Shown piece after piece: positions 27,105-40,779 of a stretch of 64,000 nucleotides of DNA. Made by a program: the position numbers and the translations under genes. Each line of letters opens with the position of its first letter. Position 1 is the first letter of the stretch. This DNA is from Kudoa neothunni (Eukaryota > Animalia > Cnidaria). The notes beneath the pieces are model-generated. The model did no database searches and was not told the origin of the DNA. It was given only the letters and a program-made list of their open reading frames with translations. Location: the NCBI GenBank assembly GCA_964304625.1, contig OZ199839.1:1188021-1252020 (forward strand), given 5' to 3'.

Positions 27105-28871
27105 ATGGTACCACCAAATCTCTATTAAGCTTGTTTACAACGGGAATTTTAGCACTCAAATCAATTCTCACAATCAATCGATAACGCTAAAGGCGTTGAT
27201 GGTCCGCCAGATTCTACTGCTTGTCAATTCATTGAAACAGAACCACCTGTGGAGAATGAGGAGGAAAAATTGGTTGTGGGCGGAAACTCTGATCCCTCAC
27301 ATCAATTGATGGGCTCCAAATTGGAAAATACTATTCCAGTCGAATGTGAGCAGGACTCCAAGGTAGAGTTGCTTCCCGCTAACGTTAACTCTCAAGAACC
27401 ACCGATTCAAGAGCAACAAGCAACTCATCGAAAAATACTTCATAAAAAGAACCGTTCAAGTGTTGGCGCCGCATTCGATTCAGTAAAACCTCACTCTAAC
27501 TTTTGGATAGATTCCCAATCCAACCACCTTCATCTTCATATAACATTTAACATGTAACATATAATAGGGTAGGAAAATTATCGGAGATGGGGCTAGGAGA
27601 GTGTACAAATTTTGCTGTTTTGTCATATCTACAGGTATTTGTGTAATAATTGCTGTCTCTATTATTACTACGTATGTGTGTTCAGGACAACAACTTATCA
27701 ACTATAAAGATCTCCCCAAATGGCTACAAGATAATGATTTTATTCGATATTTTTATCGTCCCGAATTGAAATCGTTTAAATTATGTTTCAAATCTGTGTT
27801 TAGGTAATATTTTGGTTGTTAACCCACTAATCCAACCTTTGAATCCCTCTCTGATTATTTTAATCCATTACACTAATATTTACATAACATTAATAATAAC
27901 ATCATCCCACCACATAGTCTTCACTCGGAAACCGGCAATATATGGACTCATATTATTGGAGTCTTGGTGATGATGATTTTCGGCTTGGTTATTATGTTAC
28001 GACCTTCGTTCAGCTCCACCGGCTATCCCCACTATCCGAAGGGCGTTCTGGAATATATGTTGTTTGCGATTTTTTTTATTTGTGCATGCACGTGTATGAC
28101 ATTCTCATGGCTGTTTCACACGTTGAGTTGTCATTCCGAGAAAGTACACACGCTTTTCGCCAAGTACTTACACAAACACATACTCCCCATTGAAATTATA
28201 TAATTATCTATCGTATTTTCAATCCTGATTATTGTTCTCACAATAGAATGGACTATATGGGAATTTCTCTACTTATCACCGGCAGCTCTATTCCTGTTAT
28301 ATATTTTGGATTCTTTTGTTCGAAGTTTCTGTTCTACCTCTATCTGGGGATTATCCTTGGATTGTGTATCTTTTCAATTTTGGTTTCATTTTTGAAAGTA
28401 TTCGCCACTCCCAAACTAAGACCTGTAAGAGCGGGTATTATTTTTAGTTTGTATTGTGTATGGGGTTTCTAATGAATTTTTTTTGGCTAGCTGTGTTTCT
28501 TACCTTTGGCCTCAGCAATATTATACCCATTATCCTCGTTGGAGTGTTACGTGGCTACGAATATACGCGTGATGCCATAGCCTTGTATTATTTGGTTTCT
28601 ATGGGTACCTTGTATGTGTCCGGGGCACTTTTTGTACTCTATGCGTATCCCCGAGAGACTCGCTCCCGGGAAAATAACCCTGTTTGTAATTTATTGTGGG
28701 TTGTAGGTGAGTTGTTCTAATTTGATTAATCTCCAGTTCCAAAGCCATCAAATTTTCCATGTGCTAGTTGTTATAGCTGCAGTGGTTCATGCCTTCGCTA
28801 TTTGTAAAATGGCTCATTATCGAGTTGGCATTGAAGGTGATCCCTGCCTTAAAATAAACCAGCTCATTTAA
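27105..28871 (+). CDS. ADIPOR: Adiponectin receptor (PAQR family, 7-TM); apparent +1 frameshift in a T-run at about 28629-28633
   Basis: LPKWLQDNDFI..YRP, HSETGNIWTH, FSWLFHTLSCHSEKV, DYMGISLLITGS, R.PER..PGK and FQSHQIFHVLVV.AA..H, with the Zn-binding His residues intact. The ATG (27105-27107) abuts the first intron donor. Confidence 0.9.
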
Positions 28872-33254: not shown

Positions 33255-35046
33255 ATGTTTGAACGAAATGCGATACATACAAATTCGCTTGATCGGAAAG
33301 TAATGAAAAAGTCAAAGAAAGAAACAAAAAAAGATGACTTTATGTCACAAAATAAGGACTTGCTTGGTAAACTGAGCAAAGAAAAAATACACATAATTGA
33401 TGACATGATGGAAGAAAACAAGTTCTCCCTTGGACTGATTGTCAGGTCCTCCACCGTACCTAGGTATTTTCATGGAATTACAGCCACTTTGTTTCCTCTC
33501 ATGATACAAGAAAATGTTTTCAAATATGCGCTAGCTCTCCAAAATGAAATATGCAACATATTTGATAAGCTTTCCATCAACACCGCGTACATTATCGATA
33601 ATACACGCCAAACCAATCTGAAAGAGAATTTTGTCAACAAAATGCTATACATGTACGCTAAAAGCTCAGATAAAACTCAAAATCGATGCCTTCGAGCCAA
33701 CGTCATCCGAACCACATTCACTATAGAAGCTTCCACAAAAGCTCACACACCTGTTGAAAAAATGCTAAAATTTCATAGTCTCGAAACATGCTCGTTCAAC
33801 TCAATCAGTTTTTCTTCCCCCATGGTTTCCATACATAACAAAATAATTGACTATCTCAATTACGGTAAAAAAGACGAAAATATTCTGTATCAAGGTAGTT
33901 TGGTGAGTGGAAATATCGGATTGCTGCCTGGTATTTATTATTGATATTTTTATAATAATCTATTATGTATAAAAATATTTATTTTGAACTAGGTATTGGA
34001 CAATTTATTGCCATAATATGGAACGAATATCGAAAAAGAAATGTCGCCAATCATACGGCTGATATGCCACTATATATCCTCGTAGTGATTAACAAAAGTA
34101 GTATCTATACCACCGACCACACTAAACTATGTGACTGCATCAGTGAAAGCATCAATACTGCTCTTGAAGCTGAAAACAACTTTTTCAAACAAGTTTGTTT
34201 AATGTTTGTTACCCAACTGTGATAGAGTTTTCTTATAGGAACGACCTAGAGTTTTTCTTGTGTCGCTGATGGATATCAAGGCTGCTCTCAGTGTCGATGA
34301 AAACAATGGAAACCTATATTATAGCGACCAAAAAAAAGATATTGCCAAAGGAGAGGTTTCTGTGGTTTATTTCAAGTATTAACTTATTAATTGTCGTAAA
34401 ATTTAGTGTATGAATCGTTTTTAGTACTGGAGATAAATCTCGACATTACAAACTCGATGCTATTTGGGAATTACGTTCCACTATTGAATTTTCAAATGCT
34501 ATAAAAATACCTTCTCTTGGAATGCAACTACTTAAGTATATTGATATTTCAAAGCAAATCTATAAATCAGACGCTACCTCAAACACTGGATTCTTTAAAA
34601 CATTTAAAGAAAAACTTTCGAATCTTTTCTATAAGTCAACCTATTTTGACGAGAATCCTGGATTTTTTGAAAAATTACTTAACCATGCGAAAAAAGATTC
34701 CAGCAAGTTTATCATTAGAGATGCCAACGGAGACTTGATTGAAGGTGAAAAACTTGCGCAACTGATTGATAACTACGAAAATGAAGCGGACACCAAAATT
34801 CTCCAAGGCGTTTCTATCCAAAAGTTCCCCACTCCAATGAGCCAATTCAATTATGTTAAACAACCAACTGATAGTGATCCTGCTCTTGTTGAATGCACCC
34901 CTCTTCTAAGCATTTGGGGTCTCTATATTCATGACTCTAAAAAAGAAATCTATAATAGAGTTGCCGGCTACAGTTGCTTCTGCAAGTTGTTGCAATCAGA
35001 AAAACAAGAAGACAGTTTAATCCACTCCTCTGCCATTCTCTATTAA
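33255..35046 (+). CDS. GSS: Eukaryotic glutathione synthetase-like protein, predicted catalytically degenerate (exons 33255-33930, 33993-34192, 34239-34375, 34425-35046; 544 aa)
   Basis: Colinear GSS scaffold motifs: TLFP..., ALALQ, FVNKML, VSVVYF, WELRSTIEFSNAIKIPSLGMQL, L.IWGLYI, RVAGY. The spliced ORF has no stops or frameshifts, but most active-site motifs are substituted. Confidence 0.8.
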
Positions 35047-35468: not shown

Positions 35469-36989
35469 CTAATTGCTAAATATGAGCTTCACTATCTTTG
35501 CGGCTAATTCCAGAAAAGAAGGATTCGCGGCTTCTGATTGCCCATCTCTAACTTTAGCCTCTTCTCCTGTAGTTGGAACTAATTGATCTACTTTTCTACT
35601 TTGAGCAGTATGAGTTGCTTCTCCAGGCACAATTTTTAAAGGTGTTTCGCAAATAGCTTTACATGCTACGTCAGATTTGAAGTTATTCAAGTTCATCTTT
35701 TTTCCATTGAAATTAAAGGGTTGGCAACTTGTAGCGTTATCTCCGGTTGCTACGTAGTAATGTCGAGGTAATGCGTATTTATCATCTCCAGTTGTCTCAC
35801 CAACTTTATTTTGTTTGCAAATTTCGACAGCTTCGAGTTCACCAAGATGGGCGGCTAATTAATAATTAAGGAAAACAAAATTTAATAATAATATTATTGT
35901 GAATTACTTGCAGGGCAAAAACTTGCACAGAGCTCTGCTGAACTAAAAATATTATATGAACCATCATCAATTTTGAAGGTTTCAGGAGTTTGGGAAAAAA
36001 ATGGAAGACAGGCTTTTTTTTCATTGTGGAAATAAAAATATTCTTTTATAGTACCATCTTCAGTTGTAATTTTTTTAGTAGGCTGAACTTGATATGGACC
36101 AGTTGCAATACAGGCAGCGACCAGCTCAGCTATTTTTTTATTAGAAAATATTTTTCACACAATTGAATACTTATGCACGTTTCTACGCATTTAGGTAACT
36201 CATCAAAATATCCCCTTTGTGCAGTTTTTCCAACAGCGGCATAAACACATCTTTTTTTATCTTTGTGTAGAACGACTCCCATTTTAGGCCTTTCGTCATC
36301 TACTTCTGCTGCGAAGCCGCAGTCAAATTTATTAGGAGTCGGTGTTAATGGGCTATTTTTATCAGTACTAGGGATACCACCATTTTTCTTATCTAATTTA
36401 AATTTTCCCATAAAAATGAGTTTAAAATTTAAAAAATTAGCGTTACTTTGACAAGCATTTTTACATTCAATTTCGGAATCGAAATTATTTGCATTTCCAC
36501 CACATCCACTGTATTTGAATTTGTGGCAGGAGTATGCGACTTTGCCATCAACATCCGCCTTTGAGTAATACCACCTTGTTTGTCTTTTCTCCTCTGGTAC
36601 TTCACAGGTGCCTACTGATTTAGTTTCCCCACACGCCTTTGATTTCTCCTCAGGTGTAAATGTAACTATTTCAAATGTTATTAAAATATGGGATTATTGC
36701 AATATACGGTGGTATTGACAAACCGCTTTTGACACAAAGTTATTAAAGTTTCCAAGGGAACCTTTATATTTGAATGACTTGCATGTAGCAGTAGCTTTGT
36801 CGACATACCATCTATCAACTACAGCTTTTTTTTGTTCATCTGCGCTCATCCAAGAAGGAGGTTCCCCCTCATCTAACCTGTAATCGGTTAAAGCCTTTTC
36901 TAAAATAACATTATAACCAAAATAGATTAAATTAATATACCAGCTGATACGATTTCTAAAAATAATAATAAAAATGGAAAAGTCAACAT
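35469..36989 (-). CDS. Secreted five-Kunitz-domain protein, copy 2 (intact), with S/T/P-rich tail and terminal amphipathic helix
   Basis: ATG at 36989 (MLTFPFLLLFLEIVSA) and the same 6-exon phase-1 structure as copy 1. Exons are in frame, ending PSFLELAAKIVKLIFSN. Confidence 0.9.
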
Positions 36990-38349
36990 TCACTTCTTTA
37001 ATATAGTAGACTATTAGGTACCGTATTTGAGCGAGATGTAAATTACATTTATTATACGGATGAATCAAACATCAATTGATTCATTACTTAATGTAGGATT
37101 ATCTAAAATTAAATAAATACAAAAAAATATTTGAATGACTGTCATAAATAATACTAATTATACATTATATAACCCATAAAACACAGCATAAATGTTCCGA
37201 TTTAATTTTTATTTTAAATTTGATATCTATAAGATCATAGATAATGTCCGAAGGTTTATAATTAGTTTATTTAGAACAAAGAATTTTTTTACAATATAAT
37301 AATTAAATGAAAAAGTATTTTATTTCTTGGTATTATTATGATCCCTATATTTTATCTATAATTAATGATACATGGCACTCACTAATGTGCGAATGGTTTA
37401 AACTTTATTAATTTTTTGAATTAAAATTATAAAATTAATAGATGTTTTCGATCAAGAGTTACAATTTACAAATTCCTGACTTAAACTTAACAATATTTTT
37501 TAAACAATGTTTCACCAATCTAATTTATATATATTCTATTAGCCCTTTTGATCCCAGTATATACTTAAATATACATAAACAGAATTTAAATTCTCAGGAT
37601 AATCTCCAAGCATGTTGGTTTCTTCCGGTAGAAAATAAAATTAAAACTTTATCATACTCTTATTTCTTTTATTAATTTAAAAATTAATTTTTAACCATCA
37701 ATTTTTAGTTAAAATTAAATAAATAATAAATATAAAAGATTCAAAGACCTTTAAACACTAAATATTATTGGTTCGGTTTTGAAAAGGTAGTCCATTATTG
37801 TATATCCCTAAGGAAAAATTTTTCTGTTAGTTTAGTTTAAAGGTTGTTTGATATCAAAATATTAAATGGAAAATTTTAGAGAAAATAAAAAGTAAGAATA
37901 TAAATTTCGATAAATAAAATAATTGGGGGATTCCTAAAATACCCCATCCGACCCGTTAGGTTTAAAATAGTTCAATCCTTTTTTCATATTTTATAAGCTT
38001 GTGTAATTTTTAGTTAAAATCCCCCATTAAAGCTTTAAATTAATCTAAATTTTATTCACTATTTATCACTCTATATTTTTTTAATGTTTAATAATAAAAC
38101 GAAATTTTAATAAATAAACGACGTTACACCAACACAAGTATAAATATTAGAATGTTATGTCGAACCTTAAATTTAGTAGTAACTGTGTATTTAATTTTAT
38201 TTGACCTCTCCAAATATCAATTGTTATAAAATTCTTGGTATGGAGAATAAATAATACAACGCCTTGTCAAATCATACTAAAATAAAAATATTTTGAAAAT
38301 TTCACTATAAATATATTTTGTTATTTTATTAATTATTTAAGATTTTTCA

Positions 38350-39882
38350 TTAACTCGGACCTAGTATGAAATACACTACAGTATCTAATAATTTCAGAAA
38401 AGGATCCGAAGATTGTGAATCTTTTGCAACTTTGGTCGTTCGTTCTTGAGATGGTGGTGATTGACTCCCACTGCCGGCCTGAGCAGTAGTTGAGACTTCA
38501 TTCGTAATTTTAGTTGTTAAAGGGTCTTTACAAATAGCATTGCAGGCGTCGTCAGTTTTGAAGTTATTCAAATTCATCACTTTACCGTTGAAATTAAATT
38601 TTCTGGCAAGTTCCAGCGTTAGTGCCGGTTGCTACGTAATAATGTCGAGGTAATGCGTATTTATCATCTCCAGTTGTCTCACCAACTTTATCCTGTTTAC
38701 AAGCTTCGACAGCTTCGAGTTCACCAAGATGGGCAGCTAATTAATATTTAAAGAAAACAATATTTAATAATATTATTATTTTGAATTACTCGCAGGACAA
38801 AAACTTGCACAGAGCTCTGCTGAACTAAAAATATTATATGAACCATCATCAATTTTGAAGGAGGTTTCAGGAGTTTGGGAAAAAAATGGAAGACAGGCTT
38901 TTTTTTTATTGTGGAAATAAAAGTATTCTTTTATATTTTCCCCATCTTCAGTTATAATTTTTTCAGTAGGCTGAACTTGATATGGACCAGTTGCATTACA
39001 GGCAGCGACCAGCTCAGCTATTTTTTGATTAGAAAATATTTTTCACACAATTGAATACTTATGCACGTTTCTACGCATTTAGGTAACTCCTCAAAATATC
39101 CCCTTGTTGCAGTTTCACCAACAGCGGCATAAACACATCTTTTTTTATCTTTATGTAAAACAACACCCATTTTCGGCGTCGCGGTGTCCACTTCAGCTGC
39201 GAAGCCACAGTCAAATTTATTAGGAGTCGGTGTTAATGGGCTATTTTTATCAGCACTAGGGATACTACCATTTTTCTTATCTAATTTAAATTTTCCCATA
39301 AAAATGAGTTTAAAATTTAAAAAAATGGCGTTACTTTGACAAGCATTTTTACATTCAATTTCGGACTCAAAATTATTTGCATTTCCACCGCATCCACTGT
39401 ATTTGAACATGTGGCATGAGTGAGCGCCTTTGCCATCAACATCCACCTTTGAGTAATACCCACCTTGTTTGTCTTTTATCCGTTGGTACGTCACAAAGTC
39501 CATCTGATTTTAGATTCGCCACACGCGTTGGACTTCTCCTCAGGTGTAAATGTAACTATTTCAAATGTTATTAAAATATGGGATTATTGCAATATACGGT
39601 GGTATTGACAAACCGCTTTTGACACAAAGTTATTAAAGTTTCCAAGAGAACCTTTATATTTGAATGACTTGCATGTAGCAGTAGCTTTGTCGACATACCA
39701 TCTATCAACTACAGCTTTTTTTTGTTCATCTGCGCTCATCCAAGAAGGAGGTTCCCCCTCATCTAACCTGTAATCGGTTAAAGCCTTTTCTAAAATAACA
39801 TTATAACAAAAATAGATTAACTTGATATACCAGTTGATACAATTTCTAATAATAATAATAATAGAAATGGAAAAGTCAACAT
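38350..39882 (-). pseudogene. Five-Kunitz-domain gene, copy 3; three +1 homopolymer frameshifts (pseudogene or assembly error)
   Basis: Extra bases relative to paralogs at about 39510 (T4), 39460 (C3) and 38600 (T4). Otherwise colinear, ending DPFLKLLDTVVYFILGPS. Confidence 0.6.
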
Positions 39883-40779
39883 TCACTTCTTTATTAAAGT
39901 AGACTATTAGGTACCGTATTTGAGCGAGATGTAAATTACATTTATTATACGGATGAATCAAACATCAATTGATTCATTATTTAATGCAGGATAACTTAAA
40001 ATTTAATAAATATTAAATATTTTGCATTAGTTGTACTAATTTTCATTATAACATATATTAACCACACAACCTAAATATGACAAATTTAATTTCAAATTTT
40101 GATATTTATAAAATCATATACAATGACCGAAGATTTGTAATCTAGTTAATTTAGAACGAAGAACATTTATCTATTGTTAAAATTAATTAAAAATGTTTAT
40201 CTTCAGAGATTATTACGATCAATTCATTTTACATAGGATTAACGGCACTCAATAATGAGAAAATGATTTAGATTCAACTAATTTTTTTAATTTAAATAGG
40301 AAATTTAATAATTATGCAAGATCAAACTTTCTAATTTATAGCTAAGAAAATTAAGAATAATATTTTTTTAAAATATGTTTTAAATTTTATTTTATATATA
40401 TTTTATTAGCCCTTTTGGTCCAGCGTATACTTAATTATACACGATCAAAAGTTGAATTCCCTAGACGCTCTCGCTTGACTATTCCATCTACAATAATTTC
40501 TGAACATTTTATTTAATTTATTTTTTCAAAAAAGATATTACGTTATTACAGTAAACTTAAATAGGAAGATATTAATAAAATTATTAAAATTGCATTGTTT
40601 TGAAAATAGGATAATTATTCAAGCGTTGGTTCAAAATTATAATAACACGCAGCTATGTAAAAAATATTTTTTCATAATAAAACTAACAAAAATATTTGTA
40701 TGAATTATCAAAACAAAACATAAACTTTCAAAGAGATTCACATGTAAATATATCTGTATATTTAAATATAAATTAGGCC

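Follow-up and report, generated by a model that had tools for sequence, protein, structure and literature searches.

A glutathione synthetase-like gene of the myxozoan Kudoa neothunni probably encodes a selectively maintained, non-catalytic paralogue of the parasite's own enzyme

Within a 64,000-nucleotide stretch of the genome of the myxozoan parasite Kudoa neothunni (assembly GCA_964304625.1, contig OZ199839.1, forward-strand positions 1,188,021 to 1,252,020; hereafter the window), we found a glutathione synthetase-like (GS-like) gene at positions 33255-35046 on the plus strand. The gene probably encodes a non-catalytic paralogue, or pseudoenzyme, of the parasite's own glutathione synthetase (GSS). 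This class assignment was made from sequence alignments because the essential ligand residues were lost in an otherwise intact homologue that is under purifying selection. The open reading frame and splice-site reading revealed four exons joined by GT..AG introns, with no internal stops or frameshifts; the coding sequence of 1599 nt specifies 532 residues followed by TAA. An initial annotation of the stretch had described an undamaged spliced reading frame of 544 residues, of which the intactness stood and the length proved to be a small miscount.

Homology searches were run exon by exon, and two-sequence profiles were built from each window exon and the matching exon of an orthologue on contig L006 from a relative, described below. 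Exon 1 matched the Pfam family PF03917 (E=5e-11, 42.4 bits against a cut-off of 25, profile positions 11-158). Exons 3 and 4 matched consecutive pieces of PF03199 in collinear order, at profile positions 31-70 (E=7e-3, 17.3 bits) and 76-106 (E=3e-5, 24.9 bits, cut-off 20.9), respectively, and the L006 orthologue scored 58.1 and 27 bits against the GS family profiles. HMMER alignments of single exons to human GSS covered residues 25-175 and 272-454. Among the PDB chains, the exon 1 two-sequence profile matched soybean hGS at 3.6e-8 and human GSS at 1.2e-7; over the exon 1 and exon 4 profiles together, E-values ran from 3.6e-8 to 2e-5 for soybean hGS, human GSS and potato GS, with weaker matches to the nematode effectors Gpa-GSS22 and Gpa-GSS30. 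The exon 4 profile alignment spanned residues 272-457 of human GSS, 297-481 of soybean hGS and 281-466 of potato GS. Exon 2 alone gave nothing significant in Pfam or PDB, and its relationship to GSS is positional, being collinear with exon 2 of the canonical gene; exons 2 and 3 searched singly against PDB gave chance-level matches only (CD80, TCR). A Foldseek search with the exon 4 model placed human GSS, hGS, Gpa-GSS22 and potato GS in ranks 1-7, with a best E-value of 2e-3, a weak match obtained with a low-confidence model. As judged from these profile matches, the GS-like protein is a GSS homologue, and the relationship is statistically real. Compared with canonical eukaryotic GSS (EC 6.3.2.3; PF03917 plus PF03199; human 2HGS, potato 5OES and the Kudoa enzyme), it aligned as a full-length homologue with the same domain order and a similar length, and the core motifs TLFP, the W..R...E.S.A.K.P helix, the I.G strand and N.V.G are common to both. 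The identity to the canonical Kudoa GSS is about 20%, and the Lys-rich N-terminus is an addition in the GS-like protein.

The residues that bind the nucleotide are almost entirely lost. The ADP pocket has been tabulated as 15 residues in potato GS and in 30 GS proteins of nematodes (S4 Table, PMC5919673); in St-GSS1 numbering these are M141, I152, E153, N155, K318, V370, K372, N381, Y383, M408, Q409, I411, E434, R459 and K461, and we scored them on HMMER alignments. The GS-like protein matched potato GS at 1/15 positions, K461 (human K452), which is Lys in both the window protein and L006. Elsewhere, the window protein and L006 carry, respectively, T and S at M141 (human M129), I and V at K318 (human K305), I and T at V370, L and F at N381, E and K at Y383, Q and Y at M408, K and K at Q409, P and D at I411, L and L at E434 (human E425), and F and K at R459 (human R450). 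K372 (human K364) is deleted together with Pro-Gln, and I152, E153 and N155 (human I143, E144 and N146) are kept in none of three possible registers. By motif, the canonical Kudoa GSS has 14/15 of these residues (IEMN, FKKFQ, LKPQREGGGNNLYG, IIMSLI, SELGIFG and LVRTK), and the nematode GS proteins have 8-14/15, with an average of 11.7/15 (S4 Table, PMC5919673). The six positions that are invariant in all 30 nematode proteins, namely E153, N155, K318, V370, K372 and E434 (PMC5919673), are all changed or deleted in the GS-like protein. The loss of machinery exceeds that of the nematode GS-like effectors (1/15 versus 8-14/15), which bears out the initial annotation in calling the Kudoa case a more extreme repurposing; a conserved set of Mg and ATP ligands, which would have argued against that proposal, was looked for in the alignment, and 1/15 was kept.

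The substrate pocket was assessed at human R125, S149, S151, E214, N216, Q220, R267, Y270 and R450 together with the Gly-rich and Ala-rich loops, and we found that it was not preserved. R267 is replaced by N and Y270 by D in both orthologues, within an NTGD motif; E214, N216 and Q220 are kept under no register; and R125 is retained in the window copy alone, with Gln in L006. The two orthologues have different, degenerate versions of the Gly-rich loop, REGGGNN having become RDANGDL in the window protein and IDNNKTF in L006, and the Ala-rich loop (A-loop) is gone through a 7-residue deletion. As for the Mg2+ ligands, no register preserves both Glu144 and Asn146 in both orthologues, and Glu368 is replaced by Asp in the window protein and in L006. 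The by-eye motif pairs of the initial annotation were essentially reproduced by HMMER (RSDY to RTTF, VVYFRDGY to VVYFNTGD and SELGIFG to PLLSIWG). So were the individual losses that it had listed: Lys305 became Ile, Glu368 became Asp, Glu425 became Leu and Arg450 became Phe with Lys452 retained; in KPQREGGGNN the KPQ is deleted and RDANGD follows; and the A-loop deletion was recovered. Its claim that the ligands E144 and N146 are altered holds in that the two are never kept together in both orthologues, although the exact register of the strand is ambiguous.

The window gene is accompanied by a canonical glutathione pathway. We searched the K. neothunni assembly (40.26 Mb, 4 contigs, about 30% GC; contigs are labelled C1-C3 here) with family profiles, as the initial annotation had suggested for canonical GSS, GS-like paralogues and GCL. 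One canonical GSS was found at C1:2665388-2667073 (281.9 bits against PF03917), the only strong PF03917 locus besides the window gene, and the GCL catalytic subunit (GCLC) was found at C1:11644111-11645443 (232 bits). Because both are encoded elsewhere, glutathione synthesis in Kudoa is, on this gene content, independent of the GS-like gene. All three introns of the GS-like gene are matched in the canonical Kudoa GSS by position and phase: the first lies in the Gly codon preceding the I..I...W..Y helix, the second, in phase 0, precedes the PF03199 strand and agrees within one codon, and the third, in phase 2, interrupts the codon following VVYF. Intron 2 of the canonical gene (L001:2290-2340) is unusually short and its donor ambiguous, GTAATT giving 45 nt and GTTAGT 33 nt, with the frame kept either way. 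Since three introns are common to both genes, we infer that the GS-like gene arose by DNA-level duplication of a Kudoa-lineage GSS, and neither as a retrocopy nor by transfer. The independent origin proposed in the initial annotation is upheld: the genome is that of a myxozoan cnidarian and the intron pattern is that of its own GSS, so the origin is separate from that of the nematode family. A plant-parasitic or other nematode origin of the DNA was also tried and rejected, as no SL1 was found by pattern (2 mismatches allowed) or with Rfam RF00198. In total, one canonical GSS and one intact GS-like gene were counted in the genome, next to one decayed duplicate and two small fragments. The fragments are short, contain stops and match the C-terminal GS-like profile at C2:1279768-1279881 (E=6e-7; ~27.7 kb past the window end) and C2:5881448-5881597 (8e-3), and are probably what is left of other GS-like copies that have died.

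An all-library HMMER search with exon 1 identified a single relative, P0001, with 34% identity. This orthologue lies on a 2.8-kb Logan contig (L006, 19.6% GC) that holds the whole gene. Its exons measure 625/200/137/610 nt, so that exons 2 and 3 are exactly equal in length to those of the window gene, and all phases are the same; a PAQR/HlyIII gene is the upstream neighbour in both. The two proteins are 37% identical over 508 aligned residues, evenly spread across exons. Conservation is highest in the former cleft segments (NTGDK, ET.SFN.IS, ECTPL..IWG and GYSC) and the structural core, and lowest in the former ATP lid (exon 4 columns ~36-150). Word searches with exon 1 and with the exon 4 profile gave nothing outside the L006 contig, the P0001 cluster has one member, and the ESM Atlas gave no usable match with exon 4. 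As far as the databases reach, the gene appears to be restricted to the Kudoa lineage.

To an extent that silent sites do not share, the protein sequence has been retained. At four-fold codon third positions, the agreement between the window gene and L006 was 0.30, equal to the 0.30 expected from composition, and these sites are saturated. A classical dN/dS between the orthologues was set aside for that reason, and a relative-rate test against a pseudogene was used instead. This second copy, of recent origin and on a different chromosome from the window gene, lies at C3:9309494-9311163 (L018:1501-3170) and was found by the genome profile search; it is ~80% identical to the window gene in exons and ~75% in introns, and its 3' flank is also duplicated. 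With at least 13 premature stops and many frame-breaking indels, the C3 copy is a dead duplicate of the GS-like gene, and it served as the neutral control, with L006 as outgroup. Of the sites that differ between the copies, 58 have the outgroup residue in the window copy and 13 have it in the C3 copy (binomial p=6e-8), a comparison in which the alignment of the outgroup against the window copy could slightly inflate the 58 count. The pairwise dN/dS between the window and C3 copies was 0.37, and the site counts favour constraint on the window copy. The probabilities that frames of 532 and 523 codons stay open by chance are 4e-17 and 3e-25. The GS-like gene is under purifying selection in at least two species, because 37% protein identity persists despite saturated silent sites, the exon layout is identical and the 58 versus 13 test points the same way. 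It has also evolved rapidly, with 37% identity between orthologues compared with 67% for the neighbouring PAQR gene.

The exons of the window gene distribute over the GSS fold as follows. Exon 1 (33255..33894, 640 nt, ending in phase 1) encodes the Lys-rich N-terminus and then the N-terminal portion of the ATP-grasp domain of GS, corresponding approximately to human GSS 12-182. Intron 1 (33895..33992, 98 nt, GT..AG, phase 1) interrupts a Gly codon and has a GC content of 0.245, compared with about 0.36 in exons. Exon 2 (33993..34192, 200 nt) occupies the position of human GSS ~190-235, the Glu214/Asn216/Gln220 substrate pocket, with none of the three kept, and is followed by intron 2 (34193..34238, 46 nt, phase 0). 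Exon 3 (34239..34375, 137 nt, ending in phase 2) belongs to the substrate-binding domain PF03199 and has VVYF at its end; intron 3 (34376..34424, 49 nt, phase 2) lies in the codon after VVYF. Exon 4 (34425..35046, 622 nt including TAA) completes the PF03199 domain and continues through the former lid, the Gly-rich loop and the Glu425 strand to the C-terminus, corresponding to human GSS ~270-460. Across the gene, GC is 0.35-0.39 in exons and 0.22-0.30 in introns, a split that agrees with the exonic and intronic values published for the K. neothunni genome (PMC12239612). In the exon 1 alignment, an alternative start codon, Met17 (33303..33305), aligned to Met1 of L006, and residues 1-16 had no counterpart in that orthologue; because of this absence, Met17 (33303) may be the true start, which would give a 516-residue protein.

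Hydropathy analysis covering the whole protein revealed no hydrophobic N-terminal or transmembrane-like segment in either orthologue. The maximum Kyte-Doolittle value (9-residue window) in the first 40 residues was -0.32 for the window protein and 0.78 for L006. The N-terminus is basic in both, and the pattern K-K/R-x-K/R is matched by KKSK at residue 18 of the window protein and KKEK at residue 4 of L006. The profile agrees with the initial annotation, which had described a Lys-rich N-terminal extension and no classical signal peptide. Its suggestion that the protein might be an effector found no support, as there is neither a signal peptide or transmembrane segment nor an expanded gene family (one intact copy, one decayed copy and small fragments).

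The surroundings of the gene were also surveyed. At 28245-28826 (+), the window carries the last exons of a PAQR/HlyIII-family (adiponectin-receptor-like) gene that are 57-80% identical to the upstream gene of L006; the spacer between it and the GS-like gene is about 4.4 kb in the window and 275 bp in L006. Downstream, 36130-37068 (-) and 39018-39961 (-) form a tandem pair of near-identical genes with a Kunitz/BPTI-like Cys pattern (F.Y.GC.GN.NNF...C...C), as judged by eye. Word depth is about 3.5x in the DNA runs that contain the window, all from a single study, as would be expected of a parasite present at a low level in host-fish data. At assembly level, a (TAAACC)n telomere-type array was found at C2:12039536-12040069 (near 12.04 Mb), at one contig end only, with 85 overlapping matches to a five-repeat (30-nt) pattern. 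It agrees with the published assembly, in which a (TAAACC)n telomere occurs at one chromosome end and which comprises 40.2 Mb in three chromosome scaffolds plus a circular mitochondrion, with a scaffold N50 of 12.0 Mb and 30.4% GC (PMC12239612).

Several points weigh against the pseudoenzyme reading. The residue assignments depend on an alignment at ~20% identity, and the Glu144/Asn146 strand can be shifted by 1-2 residues, which gives three possible registers. A Glu at or near position 146 and the Asp in place of Glu368, kept in both orthologues, might remain able to bind a metal. Fold and cleft geometry were read indirectly, from alignments made exon by exon, and the AlphaFold models of single exons were of low quality (mean pLDDT 50.4 and 39.1). 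The gene has been seen in two species only. Three metatranscriptome runs (X10-X12) contained no reads of it, although these runs share only a species label, apparently that of the host fish, with the DNA source and may contain no parasite; the genome paper likewise obtained too few parasite RNA reads for annotation (PMC12239612). Finally, both the nuclear targeting that the K-K/R-x-K/R motif could provide and any binding partner of the protein are conjectural.

We consider it unlikely that the protein is still an enzyme, working by new chemistry without the classical ATP-grasp ligands or through a metal site remodelled from the conserved Glu and Asp. Such an activity would fit the strong conservation of the former cleft segments between orthologues and the retention in both of Lys452, the Asp at the Glu368 position and the Glu in the Mg strand. 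However, loss or deletion has affected Lys305, Lys364, Glu425, Asn373 and Tyr375 as well as the Gly-rich loop and the A-loop, and conservation is lowest in the ATP-covering lid; no ATP-grasp enzyme is known to function without these elements. A secreted or host-directed effector, analogous to the GS-like effectors of cyst nematodes, appears to be very improbable. The parasite genome, the diverged GS paralogue and the nematode precedent (PMC5919673) speak for it, as do the Kunitz-type genes nearby, whereas the strongly basic, hydrophilic N-terminus lacks a hydrophobic segment in both orthologues, and the 275-bp gap upstream of the L006 gene contains no conserved stretch fit for a leader exon. 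In addition, the family is unexpanded, and the nematode effectors retain the ATP site (8-14/15), which the Kudoa protein does not. There is scant likelihood that the gene is a non-functional relic, a duplicate turning into a pseudogene or a mis-predicted gene. The lack of transcript support, the fast evolution (37% orthologue identity versus 67% for PAQR) and the clearly dead sister copy on C3 would be expected of a relic, but the 532- and 523-codon frames are open in two AT-rich genomes with saturated silent sites, the lengths of exons 2 and 3 and all phases are identical between orthologues, GC differs between exons (0.35-0.39) and introns (0.22-0.30), and the 58 versus 13 sites favour constraint on the window copy.

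On the pseudoenzyme reading, the GS-like gene began with duplication of the Kudoa GSS gene at the DNA level, introns included. The GS/ATP-grasp core was kept, whereas the residues for ATP, Mg2+, gamma-glutamylcysteine and glycine were lost, as were two of the three mobile loops by which the active site is shut, with the separate canonical GSS and GCL providing for glutathione synthesis. Because there is no signal peptide, the protein would be expected to stay in the parasite cell, where the motif in its Lys-rich N-terminus might direct it to the nucleus. It would act by binding and not by catalysis, using a remodelled cleft for a new ligand or partner; this is suggested because the former cleft segments are the most conserved and the former ATP lid the least. 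GSS is an obligate dimer, and for this reason pairing with itself or with the active GSS, in the manner of a prozyme, would be the preferred mechanism, in hypothetical form. By analogy, we propose only tentatively, as a possibility more doubtful than not, that a dead GS subunit dimerises with the active Kudoa GSS or serves as a scaffold for another client through the remodelled cleft, possibly in the nucleus. If so, the glutathione supply or redox signalling of a parasite inside fish muscle would be under its control, and it would be the first GSS-derived non-catalytic regulator and a new ATP-grasp pseudoenzyme class.

To understand how the Kudoa protein relates to known systems, we compared it with the GS-like effectors of Clade 3 from cyst and reniform nematodes (Gpa-GSS22 and Gpa-GSS30; PDB 5OEU, 5OEV and 5OET; Lilley et al. 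2018), which have signal peptides, gland-cell expression and large expanded families of tylenchid origin and still bind ADP and 2 Mg (PMC5919673). Both appear to be parasite-specific paralogues of housekeeping GSS in which the canonical reaction is gone and the substrate pocket is strongly remodelled, as read on the Kudoa side from sequence. The Kudoa protein differs in having no signal peptide, a single intact copy, a lost nucleotide site and an independent cnidarian origin. Synapsins and TTLL12 are non-catalytic proteins derived from the ATP-grasp fold, which is kept as a binding or scaffold module, and synapsins still bind ATP. They share with the GS-like protein the idea of a ligase-free ATP-grasp fold, but they belong to other ATP-grasp subfamilies, and the likeness would lie at the level of fold class. 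In trypanosomatids, the prozymes are catalytically inactive paralogues of AdoMetDC and deoxyhypusine synthase; by pairing with the live enzyme in a heterodimer, they activate it. As a working model only, the Kudoa case may be alike in that a parasite carries a dead paralogue of an obligate-oligomer metabolic enzyme beside an active copy; it differs in the enzyme family, and a heterodimer with Kudoa GSS is hypothetical. In the literature, we found no account of a dead GS paralogue or of any myxozoan GS-like gene, and the only described repurposing of GSS is the nematode effector family, in which the ATP site is kept.

New regulators have repeatedly come from dead paralogues of metabolic enzymes, notably in parasites. 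In tuna and other fish, Kudoa leads to softening of the flesh post mortem. For practice, the present finding is of modest impact pending data on expression and on a partner or ligand. For the study of pseudoenzymes and the ATP-grasp family, the protein would be a natural example of a GS scaffold without the chemistry, and for myxozoan biology the gene is one more that is lineage-specific and selectively maintained. The Kudoa gene probably represents a second, independent and more radical departure from GSS, in which the fold remains under selection without a nucleotide or substrate site.

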